Notes: a model not told the origin generated them from the sequence alone. A DNA stretch of 64,000 nt from Macrostomum lignano (GCA_002269645.1 NIVC01002989.1:1-64000), one strand, 5' to 3'; positions 2,867 through 64,000 are shown, counted from the stretch's first letter. Program-made: numbers and translations.

Positions 2867-4183
2867 ATGGTGGCAGCGGCAACGACAGCAACAGCTGCAG
2901 ACAAGGAGACCAAAGAAACTTCTAAAACTGAGACAACAACTCAGAATGGAAATGGCGTTGAACAACCACCAGTGGTTGAGGAGGCGACTTCGACGCGAGT
3001 GGAACGGAGGAGGCCCCGGCGTCGCCGGTCCCTAAACGAGGACGAGTCAGCACCCACGGAGCCCGCAGAGCCGGCGGAGCCTCGGAGGCGAACCCGCCGT
3101 GGCGCTGGCCTCCTGTGCAAGGAGAAATCACCTTATCGAGATGACTCAGACGGCCATCTGATCTATGCGTTCGGCGACGTACTAAAAGATCGCTACCGGA
3201 TCGCTCGCACACTTGGCGAGGGAACCTTTGGCAAGGTGACGGAGTGCACTGATATGCAAGACCTCTGCCAGACTCGCGTTGCGGTGAAGATTGTGAAGAA
3301 TGTTACTAAGTACCGTGAAGCAGCCATGCTTGAGATCAACGTTCTCAAGAAACTTGAGGAAAACGACCCTAACGGAAGGCATCTGTGCATCCGACTACTG
3401 AGTTGGTTCGACTTCTTTGGCCACGCTTGTCTTGTGTTTGACTTGCTTGGCAAGTCAGTGTTTGATTTTTTGAAGGAGAACGACTTTGCTCCCTACCCAA
3501 TTGAGCATGTGCGACACATAGCCTACCAGCTGGTGTACTCAGTGGCTTTTCTGCACGCCAATCAGCTCACCCACACCGACCTCAAGCCTGAGAACATCCT
3601 GCTGGTGAAGTCCAGCTACACGACTTTCTACAATCCGCGCCGCAAAAAGGAAGAGCGAATGCTTGACCGTACCGACATCCGACTGATTGATTTCGGTTCG
3701 GCAACCTTTGACCACGAGCATCATTCGAGCGTGGTATCGACCCGTCACTATCGCGCACCGGAGGTCATCCTGGATCTTGGCTGGGCGCAACCGTGTGACG
3801 TCTGGTCCATCGGCTGCATTCTGTTTGAACTGTACACCGGCTTCACCCTGTTCCAGACGCACGAAGATCGCGAGCACCTGGCCATGATGGAGCGAGTGCT
3901 CGGCCATGTGCCCTACAGAATGACTCGAGCCTCGCGAGCCGGCCTCTTCCGGCATGGCAGGCTCGATTTCGACCATCACGGAGTTGAAGGCCGATTTGTG
4001 CGCGAGAACTGCCGCCCGCTGCATAGATACCTGCGAGATGAGACGGTCGATTCGCGCAACCTCCTGGATCTGATGCAGCGGATGCTGGAATTCGAGCCGG
4101 AGGAAAGGACGACGCTCAAAGTTGCGCTGCATCATCCGTTTTTCGCCTCGATACCGCCGGAATCAGTTCTGCACTCGGGCTAG
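2867..4183 (+). CDS. CLK: LAMMER-family dual-specificity kinase (CLK/Doa-like), single exon; true start probably ATG 2424 via a 1-nt frameshift near 2826-2830
   Basis: [52 protein letters not shown] and the diagnostic [11 protein letters not shown]; DDSDGHL before the kinase domain; no intron; TAG stop at 4181-4183. Confidence 0.96.
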
Positions 4184-34489: not shown

Positions 34490-37400
34490 TCAGGGTGGTC
34501 CGCCGGTCCGTCCTGCAGCGTGATCTTCCGTTGGGAAGAAACTGGCTCGTCTAGTCGCCCGAAGGAACTGGATGAGCCGTGGGATGCTGTCGGGCTGGCA
34601 GACCTCGTCAATGGACGGGTTCGGCCCGAGGTAGCGTAGCCGGTCTCTGTTAAAGAAAGGGCAGTGACAGACAAAGTGCTGAGCATCTTCATTGTCGCAC
34701 TCGCAAAAGGGGCAAATTTCGCTCTCGAGGTCGCCTCGGAGGAAGCAGTGCCTGGCGAGGTAGCCATGGCCGGTGAGGGTCATGACAAGGGCTCGAATAT
34801 CCTTCCGATTCTGGTTCAGAAGGATGTTTCTGAGCCTGTGAGACGGGCAAGGAACCGCGGCACGAGATTGCCGGCAGTTTTGGGTGCCCGCCCATCTGTC
34901 CCTGTGGAGGGAGTCAGCCCAGTCGTCGATCTGACGATTGATGACTGTCAAGGGCATAGGGACCAGGGGGGCAGGGCCGAAGAAAGAGCCAGAGCCGCCC
35001 CTCTTGGCGAGGGTGTCTGCCAGCTCGTTCCCCGGAAACCCTGCGTGCCCTGGGATCCACTTCAGCCTGACAGTATTGCTTCTGGCCAGGAGGTTGAGCT
35101 GCCGGGCGCAGTCGGCGACTGTCCGGGAGATCGTTGTGGTGTGGCAAAGGGCCTGTAAGGCCGCTTGGCTGTCGGAGTGGATGACAATAGTCTTTCCTCT
35201 CGTAACCTTGGCGTTCAGCTCTGCAGCGCAAGAGCTGATGGCAAGGACTTCGTTCTGGAAGACTGTGGAGAGTCTACCAGTGTGCTGGGCATGCGTGGCA
35301 ATTACGCGGCCGTTGATGATGATGCAGACCCCAAAGCCGGCGCGACCGTCTTTGATGGATCCGTCCGTGTAGCAATGGACCTCCTGGAAATTCCAGTGGT
35401 CATTGGCAGCATCCCTAGAGGGGATGGTGACCTTGTAGCGCTGAAAGAGGTTGAGAGTGCGGGGTTCGCCGTCAGATAGGACGTGGAGCCCGCCGCTGTC
35501 TCTCAAGTCCTTGAGGCAGAGGTCAGCGTGGGGCAGAAGCTTGCGCTTAGCCATGGCCCTATGGGGCTGGATTCGAATGCCAGCGTCAGCTAGACGGCGG
35601 GCAGTCTTAGCCGCTTCCCTGCGGACAAAGATGTCCAGCGGAGGAATGTTGAGGAAGGCGTTGAGGCCATCGTAGGAGCAGACGGAGGGGCGCTCATGAT
35701 CGTGCGACAAGCGCGCCCTTGCGCTCTCCTGAGAGCCTCTAGACAGGTCTTTATCTGCAGGGCGCTAGCCCAGATCAGGCCGCCATACGAGATAGCGGGC
35801 CTAACCATTGCAGTGTAGATCCACCAGAGGCGCTTGGGGGTGAGCCCCCAGGTGGTGCCGACAGCCCTGCGCAATTGCGCGAGGACTGCGAAGGCCTTTT
35901 TGGCTTTTGTTTGAACGTGGGGTGACCAGTTCAGCCTGTGGTCCAGGGTAATACCCAGACATTTAGTCTGCTTGCAGAAGGGGATTTCCCTTCCGTAAAG
36001 CGTGAGCGGCCGAATCTGCCACTTGGTCCTGCTGGTGAACATGATCGCTGCGGTCTTAGTCTCAGAGAGCCTTAAACCACAGCGGTCCGCCCATTGCTCA
36101 GCAGCGTAGATGAAGTTCTGAAGAAGGTCCCTGAGGGTATCAGGGGACGGACCAGATGCCACCGCGGTGACATCGTCCGCATATCCAACTTTCAGAATGG
36201 GGTCAGGCCGAACAACCCGGAGGAGCTCATCGATGACCATATTCCAGAGAACTGGAGACAGCACCCCACCTTGCGGGCTACCTTTGCAGACGGGGACCGT
36301 CCTCTGGTAGCCCAGCAGACTGGCGGTGGCCGTGCGATGGCTGATCATGTACATGATCCATCTGGTGAGATGTGAGTGCGTTTGCCTCTCACAAACAGCT
36401 CTTCGGAACGCCTCAAAGAGGACGTTATCGAAGGCGCCAATGATATCCAGGAAGATCTCCAGAGCAAAGCCATTACCAAGCACGGCCTTCTCGAGTTTAT
36501 CGACCAGGACGTGCAGCGCGCTTTCAGTGGAGCGACCCGCCCGAAAAGCGTGCTGGTTCTCGCTGAGAGGTTTGTTCTTCAGCTCAACAGAGAGAAGGCG
36601 CCAAAGCACCAGTCTCTCCATCAGCTTGACCAGGGAGGAGGTCAAGCTGATCGGTCTGAAGGATTTGATAGAATGGTAGTCCGAGCGGCCTGGCTTAGGG
36701 ATAAAGATCACCTTTGCCTCGGTCCAAGCCTGTGGGACATAACCAAGCGTGATGCATGCCCGAAGAAGGCTGCAAAGTTTGCGCAGGAAGCCTGGGCATT
36801 TAACCGCCTCTCTTAGAAGGGCCGGTACAATGCCGTCGGGTCCTGGGGCTTTGAAAGGCTTGAAGGAATTTGCCGCTCTCACAATGCGGTCCTCCGTGAT
36901 GATAGAGGCAGCCAGCGCGTGACCTCCCTCCGAGTGATCCGGAGTGGTCTGGTTAGCTGGCTCGTTGGGGAAAAACGCAGTGAGCATTACATCAAGCGTT
37001 TCCCCTGGGTTGTCCGTGGACGTACCGTCGGTGCGTTTGACCGAGGAGAGCTTAGACATTTTGTCCAGCGTGAGCGCTTTCACAACTCTGGAGGTGGGGC
37101 GTGAGCCCTCTAGCTCCTCACAGTATTGTCGCCATTTTTGAGCCTTTGCATTCCTAACCTTCCTTTTAAACTCATGAATTGCTTCATGATAGGCGGTTTG
37201 GTCTGCAGGGCTCTTAGTTTTAGTTGCTCTGCGGTGGAGTCTCTTAGCCCTGCGACGGAGGTTGCCGAGCTCGGGATTCCACCACGGCGCCGATTTTTTC
37301 CCTTTATAGGCTTTTAAAGGGCAGGACGCCTCAAAGGCGGCGGTTAGCGTCTCTGTCAAAACAGTCGCGCACTCATCCGCCTCTCGGCACGACGTGATCG

Positions 37401-38191
37401 TGGATGGTTGGCCAGGAGACCGATGGAATTCCTTCAGGGCGAGCCCGAAGGTTTCCCAATCCGTATTTCTGGCGTTCCGTCTCCACGTAACACGAGTTGC
37501 GCTACGCGCGGCCATTAGGTTGAAGGAGATGAACTTGTGATCCGAGAGTGAGCACTGGAAGCACCCGCCACGCTCCAATACTCTGGTAGAGTCTGGGCGT
37601 TGCGAGCGTAGCGTCGATCACCTCCGACCACCGTCCGTTGTCAAAGGTAGGGGTGGACCCAGAGTTGCAGAACTCGAGGGTCGTAGAGGCAACGTAGGCT
37701 AGGAGGTCTTCGCCTCTCTGATTAATGCCAGTGCTGCCCCAGTGAGTGTGGTGGGCGTTGATGTCGCCGGCAACCATGAGCTCGTAGTTTTTGGCAGAGC
37801 AGAGCTCTACCAGCGTAGCGAGGGCTCTGGGGACGACCGCAGCATCGCCTGGTAGGTAAACCGAGGCAATGAGGGTGGTCTTCCCAGGAAGAAGGTCCTC
37901 GGATTGGATGACGCAGATGTCCCTGTTGGACAGGTCCGATCTGAGCCACGCACTGAGCGTTTTGCTCGCAAAGATGCAAGCTCTGGGAGGCTGGTTGGCC
38001 TCGCGAGGGTAAGTATAAAAACAATTGTAGCCAGCAGGGGCGTTTTGAGGCTTACCTCTGAGAGTCCAGGGTTCCTGGACGAGGATGAGCCCCGACTTGT
38101 CGAGCTCGGCGTAACGCATAAGGTTGACCGAGGCTGCGACGCAGTGCTGCAGATTAATCTGCAGGCAATGGATTCCCTGGTTGCTGATCAT
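34490..38191 (-). CDS. LINE ORF2 polyprotein (AP endonuclease, reverse transcriptase, RNase H, CCHC), split by two frameshifts (~37553, ~35665)
   Basis: APE: QINLQH, VQEPW, GDINAHH, TPTF, SDH; RT: KAPGPDG, FRPISL, PQGGVLSP, YADD; RNase H: YTDGS, SDSQAAL, WIPGHAGFPGNELAD; CPFC...HFVCHC. Confidence 0.92.
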
Positions 38192-40284: not shown

Positions 40285-41242
40285 ATGCGTTACGAAACTG
40301 AACTCGTGCTGAGTTTCGTTATTTCCATCTTGAAAAGCATCGGCTATCCCCTGGGCCTGCTGCTACAGACCCTGGCCGTTATCTACCTGGTTCGCGGAAA
40401 CCATGGCTACCCTCCATCAGCCCGCAGCTGGTTCCTCCTGGTGCTGGGAGCGGACATCGGCAGCACACTCTACCGACTGTACGACCTCATTACGGTGGAC
40501 TTTAACATTACAAACCCGTTCATTGAGAATGCGGGCGTGAAAGGCAATTTCGGCCAGCTCTTTATTGCCCTGATGTGGGGCCTGCGACGAAGGAGCGACG
40601 CTTTAATACAGGGAATCTTCTGCAAGGCATTCTTCATGGTCATGTACTTCCCTATTTATCTATCGCCCATCGCGCTCACGATCAACTCGCTGATTCGTTG
40701 CTACTGCGTCAAACATCCGCTAAGAGCGGCTCAAGTGCCAACCGTTTGCGCAGACAGAGCTCTCAAAGCCTTTGCCGTGGTCTTGTCGTTGACTATTGCG
40801 ATCATTGCGGGTATGCTGTCCGTGGATGGTTGGTTTAGCTTGCAGCCAGTCATTACCACCTTGGGAGAAACGGTTTTCTATGGCGATTGTGCCATACCGA
40901 GAATGCACGCGATTAATACAGATTTCAACCTTGTATTAGTCAGCTATTGGTTTACTCTGGCCATTGTATTAATTATCTGCGTGTTGAATATCCTGTCGGC
41001 TGTTATCATCATCAAAGTTCTGTTTAGTGGCGAGATTCGCGCCTCAACTAATGATTCGAATGCCGAGATCCGGGCCGCTGCGATGATCCTGGGCATGAAT
41101 ATTACACTCTTTGTTTGTTTCTTCGGTTCTCGAATAATGTTGCTGGTCAGCGGCATGATCGATAAGATCGATCACCCATTAGCATGTTAGTTACTATTTT
41201 TTATTGACTATTTTTATTGCTTGCAATCCCTTTGATCCATTG

Positions 41243-48684: not shown

Positions 48685-51600
48685 AATCGATCTCGCCGAT
48701 CCGACCAGCCGTCGGACGAATTCCGCAACAGTCCGGAATGTCCGTACCGGCTCACTGAGGTGTCCACCCATCAGGACTTGGCCAGGCCGCCCGGAGTCTG
48801 GGAGCTGCGCCAGATTGGCGCGCTGGCAAAGACGCGACCCGACGAGTTGACAGCGCCGCCGCCGCCACCGGAAGTGACGTCATCAACGGCGCTGGTGATT
48901 CCCAGACGCGCGGCCGCCTGGTTCAACTACCGCTCCGTGCATCGTATCGAACGGCTGGCCTTTCCCAAGTACTTTACCGCTGGGAGCGGCTGCCGCGGCC
49001 CCGCACTGTACATGGCCTATCGCAACTGCATGATCGATACATATCGGGCCAATCCGCGGAGGCGACTCACGTTGGCTCGCTGCTCTGCTAGACTGCGCGG
49101 CGATATTAAGCAATTAGCTAAGCTGTACTCTTTTCTTGAGCACTGGGGCCTCATTAATCTGCACACGGAGCCCGGCTTGGCCGCTCCGTGTCATCTGTTA
49201 GCTACTAGCTCTGGCTCTACTACTGCTAGTAGTAATAGTAGTGTCCCAGCGAATCACCCGGCATCTCTGCGATTGACCGAATCTATGACGCCGGATGTGG
49301 CCCCGGGCCTGAGAGACTTCGGACCGGTGAGTGTAATTTTGGGTAAACGGCAGGAGTAACTATTATTGTAATATTAAGGCTAAATGCCTCAGCATCTATT
49401 TAGTAGTTTCGGGTGGAATTTTTGCGACTTACCTTGGTGGCTGGGCTCCTCTGCCGGCCAAGTTTTGCGCATGTATGTAATTTTGCGCTTCCTCAGAGGT
49501 CTTGGGAACTTAGTAAAGTTCATTCGCATGTTTATCTCAGTAATTTTTCTTAGAAGTAGTCTAGTTTTTCTTGTTCTAGATATAAGCAAGCCCATATTGA
49601 AATTCCCTATTAGGCACCGTCGATTTCAACAGCCGCCGCCTCGTCATCGACCCGGCCCGGCGCCTCGAGTTTCGGCCTTCGACTCGAACAGGCGGCTTCG
49701 AGTTTCGGCTCCCGCGGCGGCGGTCGCGGCGGCTGGTCGGAGGCGGAGGTCCTGGCCCTGCTGGAGGCTGTTGAGCTCTACGGCGAAGACTGGGCGCGGG
49801 TGGCCGACCGGGTCGGGTCCGGCCGCACCCAGGAAGAGTGCATTGTGCAGATGCTGCGCCTGCCCATTGCCGATCCGTATTTAGATGGTGCCGAGGAGGC
49901 GCTAGGCCCGCTAGCTAGCGCCGATTCTAGTCTGGCGCCATTCTCTAAGGCTGCTAATCCGGCCATGTGCACAGTGGCTTTCCTAGCCAGCTCGGTTGAT
50001 CCTCGGGTTGGCGCAGCCGCCGCTCTGGCCGCGCTAGCTGAGTACGGACGGCTTGACGCCGAAGCTGGCAGCGCCGGCGCGCCTTCCGAAGGGAAGGAAA
50101 AAACGGTGAGGAAGTACTGGGTTCGTGTCTGTTGGGATTAGCGTCAGTGTCTGTTGGGATTAGCGTCAGTGTCTGTTGGGATTAGCGTCAGTGTCTGTTG
50201 GGATTAGCGTCAGTGTCTGTTGGGATTAGCGTCAGTGTCTGTTGGGATTAGCGTCCGTGTCTGTTGGAATTAGCGTCAGGTTCTGTTGGGATTAGCGTCA
50301 GTGCCTGTTGGGATTAGCGTCAGTGTCTGTTGGGATTAGCGTCCGTGTCTGTTGGGATTAGCGTCCGTGTCTGTTGGGATTGGCGTCAGTGTCTGTTGGG
50401 ATTAGCGTCAGTGTCTGTTGGGATTGGCGTCAGTGTCTGTTGGGATTAGCGTCAGTGCCTGTTGGGATTAGCGTCAGTGTCTGTTGGGATTAGCGTCAGT
50501 GTCTGTTGGGATTAGCGTCCGTGTCTGTTAGAATTAGCGTCAGGTTCTGTTGGGATTAGCGTCAGTGCCTGTTGGGATTAGCGTCAGTGTCTGTTGGGAT
50601 TAGCGTCCGTGTCTGTTGGGATTAGCGTCCGTGTCTGTTGGGATTGGCGTCAGTGTCTGTTGGGATTAGCGTCAGTGTCTGTTGGGATTAGCGTCAGTGT
50701 CTGTTGGGATTAGCGTCAGTGTCTGTTGGGATTAGCGTCAGTGTCTGTTGGGATTAGCGTCCGTGTCTGTTGGAATTAGCGTCAGGTTCTGTTGGGATTA
50801 GCGTCAGTGCCTGTTGGGATTAGCGTCAGTGTCTGTTGGGATTAGCGTCCGTGTCTGTTGGGATTAGCGTCCGTGTCTGTTGGAATTAGCGTCAGTGTTT
50901 GTTGGGATTAACGTCAGTGTCTGTTGGAATTAGTGTCCGTGTCTGTTGGGATTAGTGTCCGTGTCTGTTGGGATTAGCGTCAGTGTCTGTTGGGATTAGT
51001 GTCCGTGTCTGTTGGGATTAGCGTCAGTGTCTGTTGGGATTAGCGTCCGTGTCTGTTGGGATTAGCGTCAGTGTCTGTTGGGATTAGTGTCCGTGTCTGT
51101 TGGGATTAGCGTCAGTGTCTGTTGGGATTAGCGTCAGTGTCTGTTGGGATTAGCGTCAGTGTCTGTTGGGATTAGCGTCAGTGCCTGTTGGGATTAGCGT
51201 CAGTGTCTGTTGGGATTAGCGTCCGTGTCTGTTGGGATTAGCGTCAGTGTCTGTTGGGATTAGCGTCAGTGTCTGTTGGGATTAGCGTCAGTGTCTGTTG
51301 GAATTAGCGTCAGTGTCTGTTGGGATTAACGTCAGTGTCTGTTGGAATAGCGTCAGTGTCTGTTGGGATTAGCGTCAGTGTCTGTTGGGATTAGCGTCCG
51401 TGTCTGTTGGAATTAGCGTCAGGTTCTGTTGGGGTTAGCGTCAGTGCCTGTTGGGATTAGCGTCAGTGTCTGTTGGGATTAGCGTCAGAGTCTGTTGGGA
51501 TTAGCGTCAGAGTCTGTTGGGATTAGCGTCCGTGTCTGTTGGGATTAGCGTCAGTGTCTGTTGGGATTAGCGTCAGCTTGCTTTTTTGGGATTGGCGTGT

Positions 51601-52149
51601 TTGTTAGGATTAGTGTCAAAAAACGGATTAGTGTCAGTAACAATTGGATTAGTGTCAGTAAACAATCGGATTAGTCTCATTAATCTCTTGCACCTGCATT
51701 GGCTGCCGCAGGCTGCAGCGGACAGCAAGAAGAAGCCAGCGGCAACCACCGCACAGCTGGAAGCCGCCGCCAGCCGCATTGCTGAGGCGGCTCTGCGCGC
51801 AGGCGCCGAGAAAAGTGCCAGCCTAGCCGAGTCGGAGCGGTCCCGGGTTCGAGCCCTGCTAGCGGTGCTAACTGACGCGCAGATGCGCCGATTGGAGCTG
51901 AAGCTGCGGCACCTGTCGGATCTGGAGGCCCACGTTCAGCGGGAGATCGACAGCGCGGAGGCGCAGTCGCAGCGCGTATTCGAAGAGCGAGTCAGTCTGC
52001 ACGAACAGCTTCAGCGAGAACATCAGCGAATCTTTGAGGAGCAGCAAATGAAACAGCAGAAGCAGCAGCAGCAGCAACAACAGCAGCGTCGGATGCAGCC
52101 GCCGCGATCGCGTCATCGACCTCACCGACCGGGCAGCGATGACGACTGA
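48685..52149 (+). CDS. SMARCC: SWI/SNF subunit SMARCC/Moira/Swi3-like, compact; exons 48685-49326, 49614-50105, 51712-52149; start codon not identified
   Basis: SWIRM (IPRRAAAWFNY...YMAYRNCMIDTYRANP...FLEHWGLIN), SANT (WSEAEVLALLEAVELYGEDWARVA...RTQEECIVQMLRLPIADPYL), PFSKAANPAMCTVAFLASSVDPRV and the C-terminal coiled coil (QMRRLELKLRHLSDLE); phase-0 GT-AG introns join these in frame. Confidence 0.9.
50126..51576. repeat. 22-bp minisatellite (GTGTCTGTTGGGATTAGCGTCA) filling SMARCC intron 2
   Basis: Period 22. Confidence 0.96.
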
Positions 52150-53169: not shown

Positions 53170-55572
53170 TGTTAGTGTCAGAATCTGCAGGATTAGTGTC
53201 AGTATGTGTAGAATTAGTGTCAGAATCTGCAGGATTAGTGTCAGTGTCTGCAGGATTAGTGTCAGTAACTGCAGGATTAGTGTCAGAATCTGTAGAATTA
53301 GTGTCAGTGTCTGCAGGATTAGTGTCAGTAATTGCAGGATTAGTGTCAGTATCTGCAGGATTAGTGTCAGTATCTGTAGAATTAGTGTCAGAATCTGCAG
53401 GATTAGTGTCAGTGTCTGCAGGATTAGTGTCAGTGTCTGCAGGATTAGTGTCAGTGTCTGCAGGATTAGTGTCAGTGTCTGCAGGATTAGTGTCAGTGTC
53501 TGCAGGATTAGTGTCAGTGTCTGCAGGATTAGTGTCAGTGTCTGCAGGATTAGTGTCAGTATCTGCAGGATTAGTGTCAGTATCTGTAGAATTAGTGTCA
53601 GAATCTGCAGGATTAGTGTCAGTGTCTACAGGATTAGTGTCAGTATCTGCAGGATTAGTGTCAGTATCTGTAGAATTAGTGTCAGAATCTGCAGGATTAG
53701 TGTCAGTGTCTGCAGGATTAGTGTCCGTGTCTGCAGGATTAGTGTCAGTGTCTGCAGGATTAGTGTCAGTGTCTGCAGGATTAGTGTCAGTATCTGTAGA
53801 ATTAGTGTCAGTGTCTGCAGGATTAGTGTCAGTGTCTGCAGGATTAGTGTCAGTATCTGTAGGATTAGTGTCAGTGTCTGCAGGATTAGTGTCAGTGTCT
53901 GCAGGATTAGTGTCAGTATCTGTAGAATTAGTGTCAGAATCTGCAGGATTAGTGTCAGTGTCTGCAGGATTAGTGTCAGTGTCTGCAGGATTAGTGTCAG
54001 TGTCTGCAGGATTAGTGTCAGTGTCTGCAGGATTAGTGTCAGTATCTGTAGAATTAGTGTCAGTGTCTGCAGGATTAGTGTCAGTGTCTGCAGGATTAGT
54101 GTCAGTAACTGCAGGATTAGTGTCAGTATCTGCAGGATTAGTGTCATTATCTGTAGAATTAGTGTCAGAATCTACAGGATTAGTGTCAGAATCTACAGGA
54201 TTAGTGTCAGAATCTACAGGATTAGTGTCAGAATCTACAGGATTAGTGTCAGAATCTGCAGGATTAGTGTCAGGGTCTGCAGGATTAGTGTCAGTAACTG
54301 CAGGATTAGTGTCAGTATCTGTAGGATTAGTGTCAGTGTCTGCAGGATTAGTGTCAGTGTCTGCAGGATTAGTGTCAGAATCTGCAGGATTAGTGTCAGT
54401 GTCTGCAGGATTAGTGTCAGTGTCTGTAGGATTAGTGTCAGAATCTGCAGGATTAGTGTCAGAATCTGCAGGATTAGTGTCAGTATCTGTAGGATTAGTG
54501 TCAGTGTCTGCAGGTTTAGTGTCAGTGTCTGCAGGATTAGTGTCAGAATCTGCAGGATTAGTGTCAGTGTCTGCAGGATTAGTGTCAGTGTCTGCAGGAT
54601 TAGTGTCAGTATCTGCAGGATTAGTGTCAGTGTCTGCAGGTTTAGTGTCAGTGTCTGCAGGATTAGTGTCAGTGTCTGCAGGATTAGTGTCAGAATCTGT
54701 AGGATTAGTGTCAGAATCTGCAGGATTAGTGTCAGAATCTGCAGGATTAGTGTCAGTATCTGTAGGATTAGTGTCAGAATCTGCAGGATTAGTGTCAGTG
54801 TCTGCAGGATTAGTGTCTATCTGCAGGATTAGTGTCAGTGTCTGCAGGTTTAGTGTCAGTGTCTGCAGGATTAGTGTCAGTGTCTGCAGGATTAGTGTCA
54901 GTGTCTGCAGGATTAGTGTCAGAATCTGTAGTATTAGTGTCAGTATCTGCAGGATTAGTGTCAGTATCTGCATGATTAGTGTCAGAATCTGCAGGATTAG
55001 TGTCAGTGTCTGCAGGATTAGTGTCAGTGTCTGCAGGATTAGTGTCAGAATCTGCAGGATTAGTGTCAGTGTCTGCAGGATTAGTGTCAGTATCTGTAGA
55101 ATTAGTGTCAGTGTCTGCAGGATTAGTGTCAGTGTCTGCAGGATTAGTGTCAGTATCTGTAGAATTAGTGTCAGTGTCTGCAGGATTAGTGTCAGTGTCT
55201 GCAGGATTAGTGTCAGTGTCTGCAGGTTTAGTGTCAGTGTCTGCAGGATTAGTGTCAGAATCTGTAGGATTAGTGTCAGAATCTGCAGGATTAGTGTCAG
55301 TGTCTGCAGGATTAGTGTCAGAATCTGCAGGATTAGTGTCAGTGTCTGCAGGATTAGTGTCAGTGTCTGCAGGATTAGTGTCAGAATCTGTAGGATTAGT
55401 GTCAGAATCTGCAGGATTAGTGTCAGAATCTGTAGAATTAGTGTCAGTGTCTGCATGATTAGTGTCAGAATCTGCAGGATTAGTGTCAGAATCTGCAGGA
55501 TTAGTGTCTATCTGCAGGATTAGTGTCAGTGTCTGCAGGTTTAGTGTCAGTGTCTGCAGGATTAGTGTCAGT
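53170..55572. repeat. 21-bp minisatellite (GGATTAGTGTCAGTGTCTGCA), ~114 copies
   Basis: Direct inspection. Confidence 0.96.
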
Positions 55573-55670
55573 AAGCAATCGCATTAGCGTCAGTATCTGT
55601 CATATGTGCACTTATAACTCAATGGTCCAATCTCTGCTATTCAGCCTCTCAAATCCCAACTGGTGAATCC

Positions 55671-58600
55671 ATGGCCACCCTATTGTGCGAATCACCCATT
55701 CCTTCTCTGCCGGATTTGCCTGGAACTGCGGCAATCGCTGCGGCGGGGGCGTCGGCAACCGACGGCCAGCCATTCTCTTCCATAGCGCTATTCGAATGCA
55801 CCATACACAATGCTCAAATGCTGCTTGAGTCGATGGAGCTGGCCGACTTGGTTCTGGCATTGAGAATAGTTTCTCAACTGCACGGCAGATTAGTTGAATG
55901 CGTGGAGCCTTCGGCTAGTAGGATAATCCGCTTAGCCGAATTGTACAGCAATAAGCAGCAATCCGATGCCAGCGTCGAGGTCAAATCAATGTCGGCAACA
56001 CCAAAGAGCGGCGGCGGCAGTGGCGTTTCTCTGAAGAGAAACGGTCGGCGCTCGTCAACATCGACCAACAATTCGCAGGCAGTTGGCAGGGCCGCTAAAC
56101 CAGCCTCGGTGACGCCCGCTGTGGCTAAATTAAAATCACCCTCTGCTGGCTCCAATTCGAAAGCTACTCCTAGTTCTGCTACTCATAGTAGCGGCTCGCG
56201 CTTGTCTAGGCGTCGGTATTCCGCTGCGGTTAGCAGCGCTTTGGCTTCGACTGCTGCGGCCGCGGCTGCGGCTACCCCTAGCAGCTCTTCTGTCAGGGAC
56301 AGCGCAACCAAAGGCCTGTCGGACAGCTGGAAACAGCTGCTAAGGCGGGCTTACAGACTGCTGCAGTCTGATGGCCAGGAGCTCTTCGACTTTACCAAGT
56401 CGTGAGTCACGGTTTGGGTGGGGTCAGTGGCTGTGGATTGGGGTCAGTGGCTGTGGATTGGGGTCAGTGGCTGTGGATTGCGGTCAGTGGCTGTGGATTG
56501 TGGTCAGTGGCTGTGGATTGCGGTCAGTGGCTGTGGATTGGGGTCAGTGGCTGTGGATTGGGGTCAGTGGCTGTGGATTGGGGTCAGTGGCTGGGGATTG
56601 GGGTCAGTGGATGTGGATTGTGGTCAGTGGCTGTGGATTGGGGTCAGTGGCTGTGGATTGGGGTCAGTGGCTGTGGATTGTGGTCAGTGGCTGTTGATTG
56701 GGGTCAGTGGCTGTGGATTGGGGTCAGTGGCTGTGGATTGCGGTCAGTGGCTGTGGATTGGGGTCAGTGGCTGGGGATTGTGGTCAGTGGCTGTGGATTG
56801 GGGTCAGTGGCTGTGGATTGGGGTCAGTGGCTGTGGATTGTGGTCAGTGGCTGTTGATTGGGGTCAGTGGCTGTGGATTGGGGTCAGTGGCTGTGGATTG
56901 GGGTCAGTGGCTGTGGATTGGGGTCAGTGGCTGTGGATTGTGGTCAGTAGCTGTGGATTGGAGTCAGTATCCATGGATGTGCATCTGGGAGCGATTGAGT
57001 TACAAGTGTGTTAATTAAGAATTGAGAAATTGAGAAATGAGAATTGAGAAAAAGTGTGTCATGAAGAGATTGAATGTGTCAGGAAGAGATTGAGTGTGTC
57101 AGGAAGAGATTGAGTGTGTCAGGAAGAGATTGAGTGTGTCAGGAAGAGATTGAGTGTGTCAGGAAGAGATTGAGTGTGTCAGGAAGAGATTGAGTGTGTC
57201 AGGAAGAGATTGAGTGTGTTAGGAAGAGATTGAGTGTGTCAGGAAGAGATTGAGTGTGTCAGGAAGAGATTGAGTGTGTCAGGAAGAGATTGAGTGTGTC
57301 AGGAAGAGATTGAGTGTGTCAGGAAGAGATTGAGTTTGTCAGGAAGAGATTGAGTGTGTCAGGCAGCCTATTATATTGCTCAAGCTAAGCAGCAGTTGAC
57401 TATCGCCCTACATCAGGTACTCTGCCCCTGGTAACCGAGCAGCAGCTGAGATTATTATCAATCGCGCAGTGGCTATGAGTGCTAAACCGACGCCCGATGT
57501 GAAGTCTTGGAAGAGTGAGTACACTCATGTCACTAGCTTAGTCTTAGTTCCTCACCTGGGCTTCTTACGAGAGCTTGCATCATCTCACAATAATGGTTGC
57601 AGACCTGTTTACGCGCTACCTGGAGCAGTGGTATCGGAAAACTTTAAAACCGACTCACTGCAAATCTGCTTGTCGTGTTCAGATGTCTATGGACAAGGTG
57701 AGTTGTGTTGGTTAAGATTAGTTACCTGTAGTAGTCAGTTTGTCAGTTTGTCAGCAGTCAGTTTGTCAGCAATCAGTTTGTCAGCAGTCAGTTTGTCAGC
57801 AGTCAGTTTGTCAGTTTGTCAGCAGTCAGTTTGTCAGCAGTCAGTTTGTCAGCAGTCAGTTTGTCAGCAGTCAGTTTGTCAGCAGTCGGTTTGTCAGCAG
57901 TCAGTTTATCAGCAGTCAGTTTGTCAGCAGTCAGTTTGTCAGCAGTCAGTTTGTCAGCAGTCGGTTTGTCAGCAGTCAGTTTGTCAGCAGTCAGTTTGTC
58001 AGCAGTCAGTTTGTCAGCAGTCAGTTTTTCAGCAGTCGGTTTGTCAGCAGTCAGTTTGTCAGCAGTCAGTTTGTCAGCAGTCGGTTTGTCAGCAGTCAGT
58101 TTGTCAGCAGTCAGTTTGTCAGCAGTCAGTTTGTCAGCAGTCAGTTTTTCAGCAGTCGGTTTGTCAGCAGTCAGTTTGTCAGCAGTCGGTTTGTCAGCAG
58201 TCGGTTTGTCAGCAGTCAGTTTGTCAGCAGTCAGTTTGTCAGCAGTCGGTTTGTCAGCAGTCAGTTTTTTAGCAGTCGGTTTGTCAGCAGTCAGTTTGTC
58301 AGCAGTCAGTTTGTCAGCAGTCAGTTTGTCAGCAGTCAGTTTTTCAGCAGTCGGTTTGTCAGCAGTCAGTTTGTCAGCAGTCAGTTTGTCAGCAGTCGGT
58401 TTGTCAGCAGTCAGTTTGTCAGCAGTCAGTTTGTCAGTTGACACGTTAGTCCCGCCAATCCCCCCTCTCCGCAGAAGCTGTCGCAGCGCCGCCGCAGCCT
58501 GCAGAGCCTGCTGGCGCTGAACCGCCTCTCCCCGGCTACCGGCGACCGAATGGCCGCCCTGGTCGAGCGCGACATGGTTAGCTCGGACGAAGAGGAGCCG

Positions 58601-58981
58601 GACGGCTGCCTGTACGTGAAACTGCTGCCGTGGGAGACGCTGGAATCGGCCAGGCTGAAGTCAATCCTAGACGGCCACTTTGCCGAAGAATTATCCGACG
58701 AACGCGAGAAAGCTGAGCTGGCCAGAGTCAGGCGGCATCCCGGATACGTGAGCAGCAGGCGGGCTCCGGTGGATGCTCCTGACTGGGCCGTGGACCGGTC
58801 CGAGAGCGCCAGCGCCGCGGCTGTGGCTGCCGCCGCCGCCCATCACGCCGAGGCGGCCACCGCGCCGGCCTGGGCCCGACCGGCGGATCCGGACGATCTG
58901 AACGGCTGCGCCGAGGACGACGATGACGAAGATATTATTGATGAAGCGTCTAGATTAGAGGCTGGATCTATCCTTGGATGA
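55671..58981 (+). CDS. Paralogue A, 476 aa, C14orf93/DUF4616-like; exons 55671-56401, 57417-57514, 57603-57697, 58475-58981
   Basis: GT-AG introns with matching phases 2, 1, 0 give one ORF (...LFDFTKS-YSAPGNRAAA...SWK-NLFTRYLEQWYRKTLKPT...MDK-KLSQRRRSL...MVSSDEEE...YVKLLPWE...RLKSILD...SSRRAPVDAPDWA); co-linear homology to paralogue B supports the exons; the family label is recalled similarity only. Confidence 0.8.
56420..56965. repeat. 20-bp minisatellite (GGGTCAGTGGCTGTGGATTG) in paralogue A intron 1
   Basis: Direct inspection. Confidence 0.95.
57056..57363. repeat. 20-bp minisatellite (GTGTCAGGAAGAGATTGAGT) in paralogue A intron 1
   Basis: Direct inspection. Confidence 0.95.
57735..58440. 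repeat. 15-bp minisatellite (AGCAGTCAGTTTGTC) in paralogue A intron 3
   Basis: Direct inspection. Confidence 0.95.
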
Positions 58982-59275
58982 GCTGCATCCATGGGTCTGT
59001 CTCTAATTAGAGACACCTTAGTTACAAGGTGCTGCAAATTTACCTAATTTAACAGTTTACATGCTGGGTCAAGTGTAGATTTATGTAATAATATATTATT
59101 TGCATTTTATTGTCTGTGCATCTTTTTCTCCTCTGACAATGCCCCCTCTGCCACCAGTCGAAAGTTAACCGAATCCGAGTTGCTATGCGCTTGATACTGT
59201 TTTTTATTCTTATTTATGTGGATTTGTGTGAATGTTTCATAATAATAAATACTGTTCTGCTAGAGTTCAAATTTT

Positions 59276-59506
59276 GGCTAGATTAGCAATCCATTACAGT
59301 TTCTTGGCTAGATTAGCAATCCATTACAGTTTTTTTGGCTAGATTAGCAATCCATTACAGTTTTTTGGCTAGATTAGCAATCCATTACAGTTTTTTGGCT
59401 AGATTAGCAATCCATTACAGTTTCTTGGCTAGATTAGCAATCCATTACAGTTTTTTGGCTAGATTAGCAATCCTTTACAGTGTTTGGCTAGATTAGCAAT
59501 CCATTT
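59276..59506. repeat. ~30-bp minisatellite (GGCTAGATTAGCAATCCATTACAGTTTYTT)
   Basis: Direct inspection. Confidence 0.93.
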
Positions 59507-59789
59507 CTGACTAGCTTACACAGAAAGTTCCTTTTAGTTTCTGTATTCCCGGGAAATGTTTCAATACTGTAAAAATGTACTTTGTTCACTATGTCTAATG
59601 CTGTCAGGTATGTACTTTTACTGCTGCATACAGTTTTAATTTTTACAGCGATTTCTTATTGGCTCGTTTTAATTAAAAATCAGTTTTCATAATTTCCGGA
59701 AACTATGATTGTGTCTGCGCCTTACTACCTGTTTGCACTTTCATTAGTTTGCACTTTTGTGGTAATTTGGCTTAGGTACCTAATCTGAT

Positions 59790-60625
59790 CCACTGAAGCA
59801 TTGGGGGGGCAGTGACCCACTGAAGCATTAGGGGGGGCAGTGACCCAGCATTGGTGGAGCAGTGATCCACTGAAGTATTGGTGGGGCAGTGATCCACTGA
59901 AGTATTGGGGGGGGGCAGTGATCCACTGAAGTATTGGGGGGCAGTGACCCACTGAAGTATTGGGGGGGGCAGTGATCCACTGAAGTATTGGGGGGGGAGC
60001 AGTGATCCACTGAAGTATTGGGGGGCAGTGATCCACTGAAGAATTGGGGGGGGCAGTGATCCACTGAAGTATTGGGGGGGCAGTGATCCACTGAAGTATT
60101 GGGGGGGCAGTGACCCACTGAAGTATTGGGGGGGGGCAGTGACCCACTGAAGTATTGAGGGGGGGGCAGTGACTCACTGAAGTATTGGGGGGGCAGTGAC
60201 TCACTAAAGTATTGGGGGCAGTGACTCACTGAAGTATTGGGGGGGCAGTGACTCACTGAAGTATTGGGGGGGCAGTGACCCAATGAAGTATTAGGGGGGG
60301 GCAGTGACTCACTGAAGTATTGGGGGGGGCAGTGACCCACTGAAGTATTGGGGGGGCAGTGACTCACTGAAGTATTGGGGGGGCAGTGACTCACTGAAGT
60401 ATTGGGGGGCAGTGACTCACTGAAGTATTGGTGGGGCAGTGACTCACTGAAGTATTGGGGGGCAGTGACTCACTGAAGTATTGGGGGGGGCAGTGACTCA
60501 CTGAAGTATTGGGGGGGCAGTGACTCACTGAAGTATTGGGGGGGCAGTGACTCACTGAAATTATGGGGGGGGGCAGTGACCCACTGAAGTACTGGTGGGG
60601 GCAGTGACTCACTGAAGTATTGGGG
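59790..60625. repeat. ~24-27-bp minisatellite (G-run + CAGTGA[C/T][T/C]CACTG + AAGTATT)
   Basis: Direct inspection; G-run length varies between units. Confidence 0.95.
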
Positions 60626-61225
60626 TGTGGGGTACTGTTTTCTGGTTTCTAATGAGCTTCTGTGTATTCTGTCATTAATTTTTCATTACGTTACTTTTGT
60701 ATAGTTAATTTCTAATAAAAATCGTAGTAATCGATAGGTTTGTATTCGTTTTATATTCTACTATTATTATATCTAAGCCAGAAATTCATTATGCCTTTAA
60801 ACGTGCAGGTAAGGCTGATCTATACTTGCATGACAATGAAGTTCACTTTGCAACCATTAGCTTTTTATATACACTTATTGCTGTGACGTCATATTGTGCT
60901 TATCTGATGGCCCTTCCTGTATGCCCTATCTTTTACGCTTATATATAAATTCAATATTAATTGTTAACTGTTAATTGCTTGAGTGAATTCTTTTCTATTA
61001 AACCAAGCCAGTCTTATATAATAGCCTGTCCAAATGTGCTTGCACATTTATTGTACATAGGCCTGCAACTTCCATGCCTTGCACCATTACTCACTTGAGT
61101 CCTTGACTGCCCGATTAAATTTGTCCACAGTCTGACTTGTTCATGATTTACAATTCACATTGGCTTCTGCTTTTAATCTTTTATCATTCGCTTCAGGTTT
61201 TTCTAAACATATTTCTGATTGAAAG

Positions 61226-61246
61226 GCAGACGTGCAGACAGACAGG

Positions 61247-61324
<78 letters not shown>

Positions 61325-61412
61325 CTAAGACAGACACTAAGACAGACACTAAGACAGACAGACAGACAGACAGACAGACTGACTGACTGACTGACTGACT
61401 GACTGACTGACT

Positions 61413-61463
<51 letters not shown>

Positions 61464-61630
61464 TGGCGGACAGACAGACAGACAGACTGACTGACTGACT
61501 GACTGACTGACTGACTGACTGACTGACAGACAGACAGACAGACAGACAGACAGGCAGGCAGACAGGCAGGCAGACAGGCAGGCAGACAGGCAGGCAGGCT
61601 GGCAGGCAGACAGACAGGCAGACAGACAGA
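61226..61630. repeat. Compound GACA/GACT/GGCA microsatellite
   Basis: Direct inspection. Confidence 0.95.
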
Positions 61631-61783
61631 ACGAAAGAACATCTTGCCAGAATTGAAGTCCTCTCTCCTTCACCCGTTGCAGCAAATTGCCTATTCAGCA
61701 CCGTCCTACCGACGGATTAAAGTCGAATAAACTGCAAATTCCTCGCACAGTTCATATCGTTAAATTCCAAGCTTCTCATTGGC

Positions 61784-63762
61784 ATGGCGTCAGCTACTTT
61801 TTCTATGCCGTCGCAGCCGCTCGGAGGAGGCGGCGGGAGCAGCGGTGGCGGCGGAACGTTCTCGCCGCTAACCATGTTCGAGTGCACAATATCCAGCGCC
61901 ACTATGCTCATTGACAACATGGCAGTGCGCGACCTGCTGCTGGCATTCCGCATTGTGGCGCAGCTGAACGGCCACCTCATGGAAGTGCTGGATCCCGCTG
62001 TGCAGCGGCTGGCGAGCGTGGCCGACGAGCACGCCTTGGTAAGAGAGGCGCTATTGCAATAATGCGCAATCTGAGATGAGTTCAGTATTGATTGGAGGTT
62101 TGGCAGTGTGTCCTGAGAGTTGGCAGTGTGTCCTGAGGCTTGGCAGTGTGTCCTGAGGCTTGGCAGTGTGTCCTGAGAGTTGGCAGTGTGTCCTGAGGGT
62201 TGGCAGTGTGTCCTGAGAGTTGGCAGTGTGTCCTGAGGCTTGGCAGTGTGTCCTGAGGCTTGGCAGTGTGTCCTGAGGGTTGGCAGTGTGTCCAGAGGGT
62301 TGGCAGTGTGTCCTGAGAGTTGGCAGTGTGTCCTGAGGCTTGGCAGTGTGTCCTGAGGCTTGGCAGTGTGTCCTGAGGGTTGGCAGTGTGTCCACAGGGT
62401 TGGCAGTGTGTCCTGAGAGTTGGCAGTGTGTCCTGAGGGTTGGCAGTGTGTCCTGAGGCTTGGCAGTGTGTCCTGAGAGTTGGCAGTGTGTCCTGAGGGT
62501 TGGCAGTGTGTCCTGAGGCTTGGCAGTGTGTCCTGAGAGTTGGCAGTGTGTCCTGAGGCTTGGCAGTGTGTCCTGAGGCTTGGCAGTGTGTCCTGAGGCT
62601 TGGCAGTGTGTCCTGAGGTTCGCACGCTACTGAGAAATCTTGCACCTACTATTAGCAGCATAAATGCAGTTGATTGTCAATCTCCATTCAACCTCTGCAC
62701 CTTCCAGTGCCCGCCGCCTCCGCCTGCCTTTGCTGATTCGTCGAGCACCTCGTCGAAGCCGGACAAAGCGGAGAAGCTGCTCATGCAGCAGCAGCAGCAG
62801 CAGCAGCAGTTCTCTCAGCCGGCGACATCAATGAAACTGGAGGCTTCAACGGCCGATTCCGACGACGACTGCGTGCTGATGGAGACGGACTTCATGCTGG
62901 ATCAGTCCGGCCTCGGAGGCAGCAGGCTGGGCGGCGGTCGCTCCCAGCAGGTGCTGATGGGCGCCGGCTTGTCTGGCCTGGCTGGCGACGACTCCGCACT
63001 CATGGGCGGCAGCGGCGGCGCCGGCAGCGGCGGTGTCGGCGAGCTGTCCAACGAGTGGAAAAGCGTGCTCAGGCGGGCCTATCGAGTGCTCAAAGACGAG
63101 ACTGGCAGCAACGTATTCGACTTTGCCCTGCCCTATTCGGCCAAGGCCAATGTGCAGGCGGCCAATCGGGTGATTGACAAGGCGCTAATGCTTGGCCGCG
63201 AGCGGCCGGCCAATCTGCAAGCCTGGCGCAGTGAGAATTTTCTAGCATTTTATTGAAATAAAACTACTTAGTATCAGTAGTACAATTTGCGTATTTAGTT
63301 AAAAACTAGAAATGATATTATAAAAGGGCGTTGCAGGGCCATCGCAAAGATGTGTGTTTGTGCATATTTAATGAGCTAAATATTAATTAGGCTAGCAAGG
63401 CGGGATTCGAACAATATTATTTGGCTTCGTTTCTCAACGTCTGGACAGAAAATTGTCCCCTCATTTTCTAGTATGTTAATAATTAACTAATTAACTCAAA
63501 CTAACTGCTTTTACCTTAAAAAAGTTAATGCTAATCAGAGCTTTAATGTTGATCCAATTTCGCCTGGAAAGTCTATCGTCAATAATTTAGGATAATTAAA
63601 GGAAACTTACACATTATCATAATATGAATAATCATGTTGCAACTGATGGCAGACAGCGCACTGAAGAACTACCTGAGAGTGTACTACAAGTCTACTCTAA
63701 AGCCTACTTATAAAAGATTCGAAGACGCCGCCAGGATGGCCGGTATAATGACGCTCTCCGTG
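61784..63762 (+). CDS. Paralogue B of 55671-58981, 3' incomplete; exons 61784-62038, 62708-63230, 63653-~63762
   Basis: N-terminal domain 26/56 identical to A without gaps; LSNEWKSVLRRAYRVL...VFDFALPYSAKANVQAA matches A; same phase-1 intron after W-R/K; next exon YLRVYYKSTLKPTY matches A's YLEQWYRKTLKPTH. Confidence 0.8.
62098..62617. repeat. 20-bp minisatellite (TTGGCAGTGTGTCCTGAGRS) in paralogue B intron 1
   Basis: Direct inspection. Confidence 0.95.
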
Positions 63763-64000
63763 GTAAGGATGAGGGAACCATAGGCAACATATCTTTCAAA
63801 TTCACCTTGGAACTCAATAGGAATCATTGGAGAGCTATGATATTTTTATATTGTACAAGTTTAAACGACTCACATGAGCTTTTGGAGATGAAGCGCCGTA
63901 CTAGCTTGTCCGAAGATTTTGATTGGTTTGCCGAATTTCGATGCGGTAAGCAAAGTCCGGATGATGAGGGGCGCAGCTTCCTGTTCGGGCCTTGGTTTAG

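Follow-up and report, generated by a model that had tools for sequence, protein, structure and literature searches.

What kind of proteins are encoded by two similar genes that lie about 6 kb apart in the DNA of Macrostomum lignano, and is any part of them shared with animals beyond the flatworms? The question was raised by an earlier reading (the original prediction) of a 64,000-nucleotide stretch of DNA (NIVC01002989.1:1-64000, assembly GCA_002269645.1; hereafter the window, with positions counted from its first letter), which proposed that the two genes (A and B) are tandem paralogues, each combining an N-terminal block of no recognised family (the N block) with a C-terminal module (the C module) resembling C14orf93, also called RTFC (Pfam DUF4616, PF15394). 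We find that A and B belong to a large M. lignano family, and the alignments suggest, transitively, that their C module is a distant homologue of part of the C-terminal half of C14orf93.

We built the exon chains of both genes by three-frame translation and splice-site inspection; all introns are of the GT..AG type. Gene A has four exons on the forward strand and encodes 476 aa, ending in a TGA stop codon (58979-58981). Exon 1 (55671-56401) contains the start codon, the N block (55773-55940, residues 35-90, a predicted two-helix hairpin), a basic Ser/Ala-rich linker (pI 11.9), and the first 30 residues of the C module (SWKQLLRRAYR..LFDFTK), and is followed by the donor GTGAGT at 56402. Part 1 of the C module continues in exon 2 (57417-57514; YSAPGNRAAAEIIINRAV...KSWK), and the long basic helix (helix 60-110 of the structural model) begins in exon 3 (57603-57697; NLFTRYLEQWYRKTLKPTHCK...MDK). 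Exon 4 (58475-58981) carries the basic stretch KLSQRRR, MVSSDEEE, LLPWET, LK..LD, PDWA, and an acidic tail, DDDDEDIIDE (58916-58945). Most of this chain can be compared with deposited proteins: from its residue 210 to the C-terminus (267 residues), the gene A protein is 100% identical to the M. lignano UniRef entry A0A1I8IQT9 (P0001), which takes in the last ~33 codons of exon 1 and runs continuously across all three junctions; and GenBank BOX15_Mlig033016g2 (P0002) corresponds to the last 214 residues and reproduces the last two junctions. The junctions of exon 2 are the same in P0001 and P0002, and exon 4 is identical in both. These matches identify the window as M. lignano DNA.

Gene B, on the same strand, has three exons in the window: exon 1 (61784-62038), with the start codon, a Gly-rich leader, and the N block (61859-62026, residues 26-81), followed by the donor GTAAGA at 62039; exon 2 (62708-63230), with CPPPPP, a Q8 run, DSDDDCVLMETD, a Gly-rich linker, and part 1 of the C module (EWKSVLRRAYR..VFDFALPYS..AWR); and exon 3 (63653-63762; NSALKNYLRVYYKSTLKPTYKRF...LSV), next to which stands a gtaagg donor, the last exon lying past base 64000. 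The N blocks of A and B lie exactly where the original prediction placed them and align without gaps, with 26 of 56 residues identical and 43 of 56 similar (E 9e-16, BLASTP). The C module of A (residues 175-277) matches 62918-63232 of gene B with an E-value of 3e-11 (tblastn), and two intron positions are common to both genes, with one private intron in each. The first shared intron, of phase 1, interrupts an Asn codon after W[KR] and is the one at exon 3 of gene A; the second, of phase 0, precedes KL[SN].R. These results confirm the two genes as paralogues. The motifs originally listed for the module were all found (W..LRRAYR, FDF, YS, TLKPT, MVSSDEEE, LPWE, LK..LD, and P.WA), and the linkers are indeed unrelated, that of B being Pro/Gln/Gly-rich with the Q8 run. 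There is no third copy of the family in the 64-kb window according to tblastn.

The same locus occurs a second time in contig NIVC01002502.1 of the assembly Mlig_3_7 (L001), which carries P0002; its exons are about 98% identical to those in the window, and the gene order is the same (a SMARCC-like gene, A, and B). The last exon of gene B is seen in this contig at 37970-38353 (KLNRRQK...TSSDEE...LAWES...LD...PWA), giving an assembled full-length protein of 423 aa with a complete C module; a called gene of 422 aa at this position spans the assembled exons. Between the two copies, gene A has nine synonymous and six nonsynonymous differences (pN/pS 0.22), and gene B has ten and three (pN/pS 0.10), so both genes are under purifying selection. 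The GenBank models of Mlig_3_7 were taken from a genome-guided RNA-seq transcriptome, leaving out transcripts that overlap repeats (PMC5730564). The deposited models are therefore transcript-derived, and they cover the last two junctions of gene A (P0002) and the exons of gene B (the 422-aa model).

Could the exon chains nonetheless be artefacts, or decaying pseudogenes in a repeat-rich region? The introns are filled with minisatellites, and the L001 copy of gene A gives a further argument for this: it has a 1-nt insertion in exon 1 (at ~8469) and a 3-nt insertion in exon 4, and the P0002 model of it begins only at an internal Met. These features may come from an assembly error or may mark a duplicate that is starting to decay. 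The window copy, however, has intact frames and canonical splice sites; independent models, P0001 and P0002, have the same junctions; synonymous changes are in excess; and both domains are strongly conserved across paralogues. We regard artefacts or pseudogenes as scarcely credible.

A and B are not the two-gene family that they were first taken for. An exhaustive phmmer search with P0001 as the query against 1.8 billion representative proteins retrieved 41 matches to the C half, about 20 of which come from M. lignano, are 320-560 aa long, and show the layout of A and B (an N block, then a variable linker and the C module), and a local jackhmmer search found N block and C module together in about 35 M. 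lignano proteins. The M. lignano relatives form at least 15 clusters at 50% identity, with several near-identical genomic copies per cluster. Gene A is nearest to P0003 (49% identity in the C half and 70% in the N block), and gene B to the group of P0004, P0021, and P0025. The architecture and the tandem arrangement recur in hypothetical proteins such as BOX15_Mlig012661g1 (PAA94810.1), Mlig012439g1 (PAA91937.1), Mlig015980g1 (PAA90217.1), and Mlig011566g1 (PAA73637.1); the linkers of these paralogues are unrelated in sequence and length, and A differs from them in that its linker has no DDDC motif and its C-terminus carries an acidic tail instead. In word-indexed searches with full-length A and with a profile of the C module, nearly all matches were M. 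lignano or unnamed proteins, without names or Pfam domains.

Tandem arrangement is seen at several loci. For example, L003 holds on a single strand, in this order, the A-type P0003, a B-type gene whose N block is 90% identical to that of B, and another family gene; in L002, P0015 comes after a B-type gene; and proteins of the P0010 and P0012 types have consecutive accessions on two contigs. Since an A-type/B-type pair recurs at a second locus, the A/B pair is old and has been copied as a unit.

The UniRef names carried by relatives (PH, Rho-GAP, Ras-GEF, BEN, ARID, CUT, PDZ, FHA, Nse4_C, and Ribosomal_L28e) were rejected as a guide to their identity, as they contradict one another and none is borne out by a Pfam match. 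Such names are attached to P0001, P0044, P0048, P0051, P0195, P0199, P0205, and others, and look like a systematic naming artefact in M. lignano.

The N block is an undescribed domain, predicted to form a helical hairpin. Fifteen paralogues align without gaps over 64 columns (alignment A6), of which six are invariant (F, E, T, L, M, and P); the consensus is FSPLTLFECT..NA.ML.ESM..RDL..ALRI...LH...V..MEP, and the family pattern F..L.LFE[CS]T..NA.ML..SM...DL..A.R....L.......M.P is present near the N-terminus of both A and B. Residues 31-95 of A and 22-85 of B match the local family profile with E-values of 1e-31 to 1e-34. AlphaFold2, given 17 sequences, predicts helices at residues 37-53 and 57-99 of A with a short turn between them, and pLDDT exceeds 90 over residues ~40-95. 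The original prediction could not assign the block to any described family, and neither could we: there was no Pfam match to an E-value of 10 with the whole proteins or of 1 with the isolated blocks, and none in a PDB sequence profile search or in Foldseek against the PDB. Similarly, the N-block profile finds nothing above decoys in 17 C14orf93/DUF4616 proteins, and nothing in the N-termini of the non-flatworm relatives described below. All N-block proteins with a readable source are from M. lignano.

The C module, of about 200 aa, has two parts in an alignment of 24 sequences (A2). Part 1 reads W..LRRAYK.L...G..LFDF..P.....N...A..VI..A and runs into a long basic helix ending KL.RRQKA; part 2 reads VL.RD.TSSDEE...LRVR.LPWES.E....K..LD...(KQR)...R....S.R..P...P.WA. 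Six positions are invariant in A2 (R101, S133, W149, K158, P194, and W200, in first-row numbering). The complete module, up to P.WA, spans residues 213-425 of A; that of B has part 1 in the window and is complete only through the L001 copy. AlphaFold2 models the module with a pLDDT of 89 and a pTM of 0.64, as four helices (one of about 50 residues) followed by a small sheet of three strands against which two further helices pack. It was proposed originally that this module binds DNA, with BEN- or Myb-like similarity. In Foldseek against the PDB, the best match had an E-value of 2.3, with TM scores of at most 0.25 (two MarR chains appeared only at E 5-8, TM 0.13); Foldseek against BFVD gave no match; PDB sequence profile searches gave nothing below E 0.2; and Pfam had no match for A or B to E 10. 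As the Foldseek and PDB sequence searches were empty, no BEN, Myb, HTH, or other known DNA-binding fold is supported, and since DUF4616 itself has no known biochemical function, the DNA-binding label is unfounded.

Outside the flatworms, the same phmmer search found the whole C module in the brachiopod Lingula anatina (LOC106158935, XP_013390516.1; E 3e-8) and the hemichordate Glandiceps talaboti (LOC144453630, XP_078001082.1; E 5.6e-6), and in metagenome-derived proteins (E 1.9e-7 for one), among them several of ~240 aa from GCA_013332915.1. Relatives lie on the short invertebrate metagenome contigs L004, L005, L007, and L008 (GCA_013332915.1/ERZ23486752) and L009 (GCA_029979845.1); all three contigs that were inspected for the ~240-aa relatives hold uninterrupted open reading frames (ORFs), and several diverged copies were retrieved. 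These proteins share the full module with A and B, including SSDEE, LPWES, LD, and P.WA; in place of the N block they have an N-terminus that looks coiled-coil-like by inspection. No Pfam domain reaches its threshold in any of them.

The high copy number leads to another explanation, namely that the family is derived from or carried by a transposon and was spread as a mobile element; the original prediction likewise spoke of transposon-associated proteins. Besides the many copies in M. lignano, this would fit the ~240-aa relatives P0062, P0026, and P0069, which are single uninterrupted ORFs present in several diverged copies (at least two in one metagenome sample), as well as one relative (P0069) downstream of a gene with a weak zf-BED match. 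A and B have introns at shared positions, however; the paralogues are 25-50% identical rather than near-identical, with pN/pS of 0.1-0.2; gene order is kept between the two copies of the locus; and the GenBank models, in which the genes appear, leave out transcripts overlapping repeat annotation. No member contains a transposase, integrase, or reverse transcriptase domain, and no transposon signature was seen, in tests that did not include a genome-wide search for terminal repeats. The one element with reverse transcriptase and RNase H ORFs in the window (34490-37578, reverse strand) is separated from the pair by 18 kb and two other genes. Shared introns, purifying selection, and conserved gene order thus do not bear out the transposon association, and we consider a mobile origin distinctly unlikely.

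How, then, is the C module related to C14orf93? Published work connects this gene with familial thyroid cancer, thyroid differentiation, and the attraction of microglia (PMC5322522; PMC10163356); no domain could be identified in the protein, including by InterPro and HHpred, a role as a transcriptional regulator has been suggested, and neither report mentions relatives beyond the vertebrates (PMC5322522; PMC10163356). Our human C14orf93 query was checked by its score of 1014 bits over the whole DUF4616 model (gathering threshold of PF15394, 27 bits); it fetched 120 orthologues, all carrying PF15394, and 17 diverse ones were tested. As decoys we used 1717 sequences that keep local composition (shuffles within 10- and 20-residue windows, and reversals). 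A profile of the 15 non-Macrostomum relatives gave each of the 17 orthologues a score of 34-43 bits (E 4e-12 to 2e-9), with decoys at 10 bits or below; its alignments cover human residues ~295-431 and start at residues 245-323 across the 17. The mixed A2 model also scored all 17 (9.4-18.8 bits) above the decoys (8.8 bits at most). In the other direction, the best relative, P0062, matched DUF4616 at 12.8 bits (E 0.059) over profile positions 296-403 of 524, weakly and in register, and it was the only family member that a model of a 16-sequence C14orf93 alignment (A3) separated from decoys. Profile-profile comparison (hhalign) of A2 with the 16-sequence alignment gave a single collinear alignment, 158 columns long, with a z of 3.4 relative to 200 decoys whose columns had been shuffled within windows; the comparison with a single C14orf93 sequence was collinear too, and both matches are statistically weak.

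Because the invertebrate relatives match both sides (A at E 3e-8 to 6e-6, and C14orf93 at 34-43 bits), we read the C module as distantly homologous to the C-terminal half of C14orf93; the link runs through the Lingula, Glandiceps, and metagenome proteins and reaches only as far as the acidic cluster. The resemblance noted originally thus holds, as far as SSDEE, as a distant, transitive homology, and not for the LPWE..LD..P.WA half. The corresponding human stretch (~295-431) includes FNGSESIKSSWN..., ELKGACVAYF..., KKLRSRRYR, and MSDEED. In the C module, the homology runs from part 1 through the basic helix to the acidic cluster (S-D-E-E). Beyond it, hhalign pairs LRVR.LPWES, LK..LD, and R..S.R.P with WVARPPRFRA, LCYHLD, and RVYGPPSDRLP (human ~433-490), and this match is weak. 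The N-terminal half of DUF4616 (positions 1-~290) has no counterpart, the A2 alignments never starting before about residue 254 of any orthologue; where C14orf93 has ~290 residues with a MSFSATILFSPP leader, a CCCC motif, and a coiled coil, A and B have the N block. C14orf93 is also named once per species in our search (isoforms aside), whereas the M. lignano family has many copies.

What might these proteins do? C14orf93, A, and B are alike in having basic stretches where nuclear localisation signals (NLSs) are predicted in the mouse protein, P19 (4931414P19Rik), and in having no assigned biochemical function. Tagged RTFC/P19 is nuclear, and its predicted bipartite NLSs are at residues 291 and 369 (PMC10163356; PMC5322522); the first starts just ahead of the aligned stretch, and the second falls inside it. 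P19 has also been reported as a secreted protein, with a predicted N-terminal signal peptide of 17 residues (PMC10163356), and by analogy with this secretion and the attraction of microglia, A and B might be secreted signalling proteins. However, neither A (MATLLCESPIPSLPDLPG...) nor B (MASATFSMPSQPLGGGGG...) begins with a hydrophobic stretch that resembles a signal peptide; the half of DUF4616 in which the signal peptide is predicted has no counterpart in them; and their linker and central helix are strongly basic, all of which makes secretion very improbable.

Most M. lignano paralogues carry an acidic-Cys-hydrophobic motif in the linker ((D/E)n, Cys, and three hydrophobic residues; e.g. DDDCCIL, EDDCILIE, DDCVMIM, and DDDCLLIG), found in gene B as DSDDDCVLMETD (62855-62890) and absent from gene A and from the non-flatworm relatives. 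It resembles a SUMO-interaction motif, a lead only, as we take it to lie outside the strict consensus patterns.

The explanation that we favour is as follows. A and B are intact, constrained members, supported by transcript models, of a family strongly expanded in M. lignano and often arranged in tandem arrays; the pair arose by tandem duplication, with later duplication of an A-type/B-type pair as a unit. Each protein consists of a family-specific N domain of ~60 aa, a variable low-complexity linker, and a predicted alpha/beta C domain of ~200 aa, which has a long basic helix and the acidic SSDEE cluster at its centre and is distantly homologous to C14orf93/RTFC. Judging from the N-termini, the basic linker and helix, and the localisation of RTFC/P19, the proteins may be nuclear; the predicted amphipathic hairpin ahead of a disordered linker is a reasonable oligomerisation element, and would probably mediate homo- or hetero-oligomerisation among paralogues; and the RTFC-like domain may be the effector or partner-binding part, whether its partner is a nucleic acid or not. 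We put the probability of this explanation as a whole at about 55%. Its statements on family and homology we hold with considerable confidence; the functional sketch (nuclear proteins with an oligomerising N hairpin and an interaction or effector C domain) is tentative, and we would give it less than an even chance.

Several results weigh against the explanation. Neither A nor B reaches the DUF4616 threshold or matches this family to E 10, and among the families listed for the 41 relatives, DUF4616 appears for none at E 0.01. The hhalign probability is only 3-6%; with a profile built only from Macrostomum sequences, C14orf93 cannot be told from decoys; and a profile of part 2 (LPWES..LD..P.WA) gives no C14orf93 signal above decoys. 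The restriction of the N block to M. lignano rests on relatives that were found through the C module, and searches of the literature and supplements for the Mlig gene identifiers met with no occurrence of them and returned no localisation, interaction, or expression data, so that function is something we infer. The missing Pfam match of A and B, the hhalign probability, and the two profile results would fit a rival reading in which the resemblance to C14orf93 is one of shared composition (amphipathic helices, followed by a basic helix and then an acidic Ser-Asp-Glu cluster) and the C-module family is an independent orphan. Against it stand the scores of 34-43 bits on 17 of 17 orthologues, with at most 10 for decoys that keep local composition, and an alignment register that was the same in every test; we find it unlikely.

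The genes were already known as deposited hypothetical proteins; the present work adds a definition of both domains, an account of how large the family is and how it is arranged in tandem, and a connection between C14orf93 and proteins of a flatworm, a brachiopod, and a hemichordate. On our reading, the C-terminal half of C14orf93 belongs to a wider metazoan module (brachiopod, hemichordate, and flatworm), confidently folded by AlphaFold2; in M. lignano this module is joined to a new helical domain and has multiplied into a large family in tandem. Its domain boundaries and conserved residues are now defined for RTFC experiments, and M. lignano, an animal tractable by transgenesis and RNA interference, offers a place to study it. 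The result is at the level of annotation, on hypothetical proteins, and holds no surprising mechanism in itself. A bolder version, in which the N block would be a combinatorial dimerisation module for a network of at least 15 pairing nuclear regulators private to M. lignano, and the RTFC-like domain an unrecognised chromatin- or nucleic-acid-binding fold kept from flatworms to humans, seems to us quite unlikely; if true, it would open a first way into the mechanism of C14orf93/RTFC, a gene of thyroid-cancer susceptibility without a known domain. The bHLH and bZIP proteins provide an analogy of organisation only: in them, too, a short helical module kept across paralogues stands beside a basic region, an arrangement that would allow combinatorial pairing, but they have no sequence or fold similarity to A and B, for which dimerisation and DNA binding are conjectural.

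Upstream of gene A in the window is the SMARCC-like gene (48760-52149, forward strand; 3559-6502 in L001), with SWIRM, Myb/SANT, and SWIRM-assoc_1 domains. It is short, 526 aa in the GenBank model; human SMARCC1/2 are about twice as long. A 22-bp ladder of offset BLAST alignments (~50125-51575) suggests an internal repeat of ~22 bp in this gene. The original prediction pointed to a variant SWI/SNF subunit beside the pair, and such a neighbour exists in the form of this short gene, but its linkage to the pair is not conserved: we rejected that idea since no such gene lies within 10 kb of the other paralogous pairs, and we see nothing that ties it to A and B.

Exons in the window are short, and introns are rich in minisatellites. 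Six of the seven introns and spacers that were inspected have a long minisatellite of their own, with none in the short intron 2 of gene A. Arrays were located at 54003-55573, 56419-56968, 57053-57363, 59272-59505, 59786-60625, 61235-61630, and 62095-62618; units are 4, 15, 20, 21, 27, or 30 bp long, differ in sequence from array to array, and are repeated in 8-99 copies with 89-97% match. Intron 3 of gene A (57742-58437) contains ~47 copies (0.7 kb) of the 15-bp unit GTCAGTTTGTCAGCA, while the same array in L001 (10257-28569) has ~1277 copies over 18.3 kb, so that either the duplicated loci differ hugely in copy number or the array has collapsed or expanded in one of the assemblies. Farther upstream in the window are a fragment of a rhodopsin-type seven-transmembrane (7TM) receptor (40285-41190, forward strand) and a protein kinase ORF (2867-4183, forward strand).

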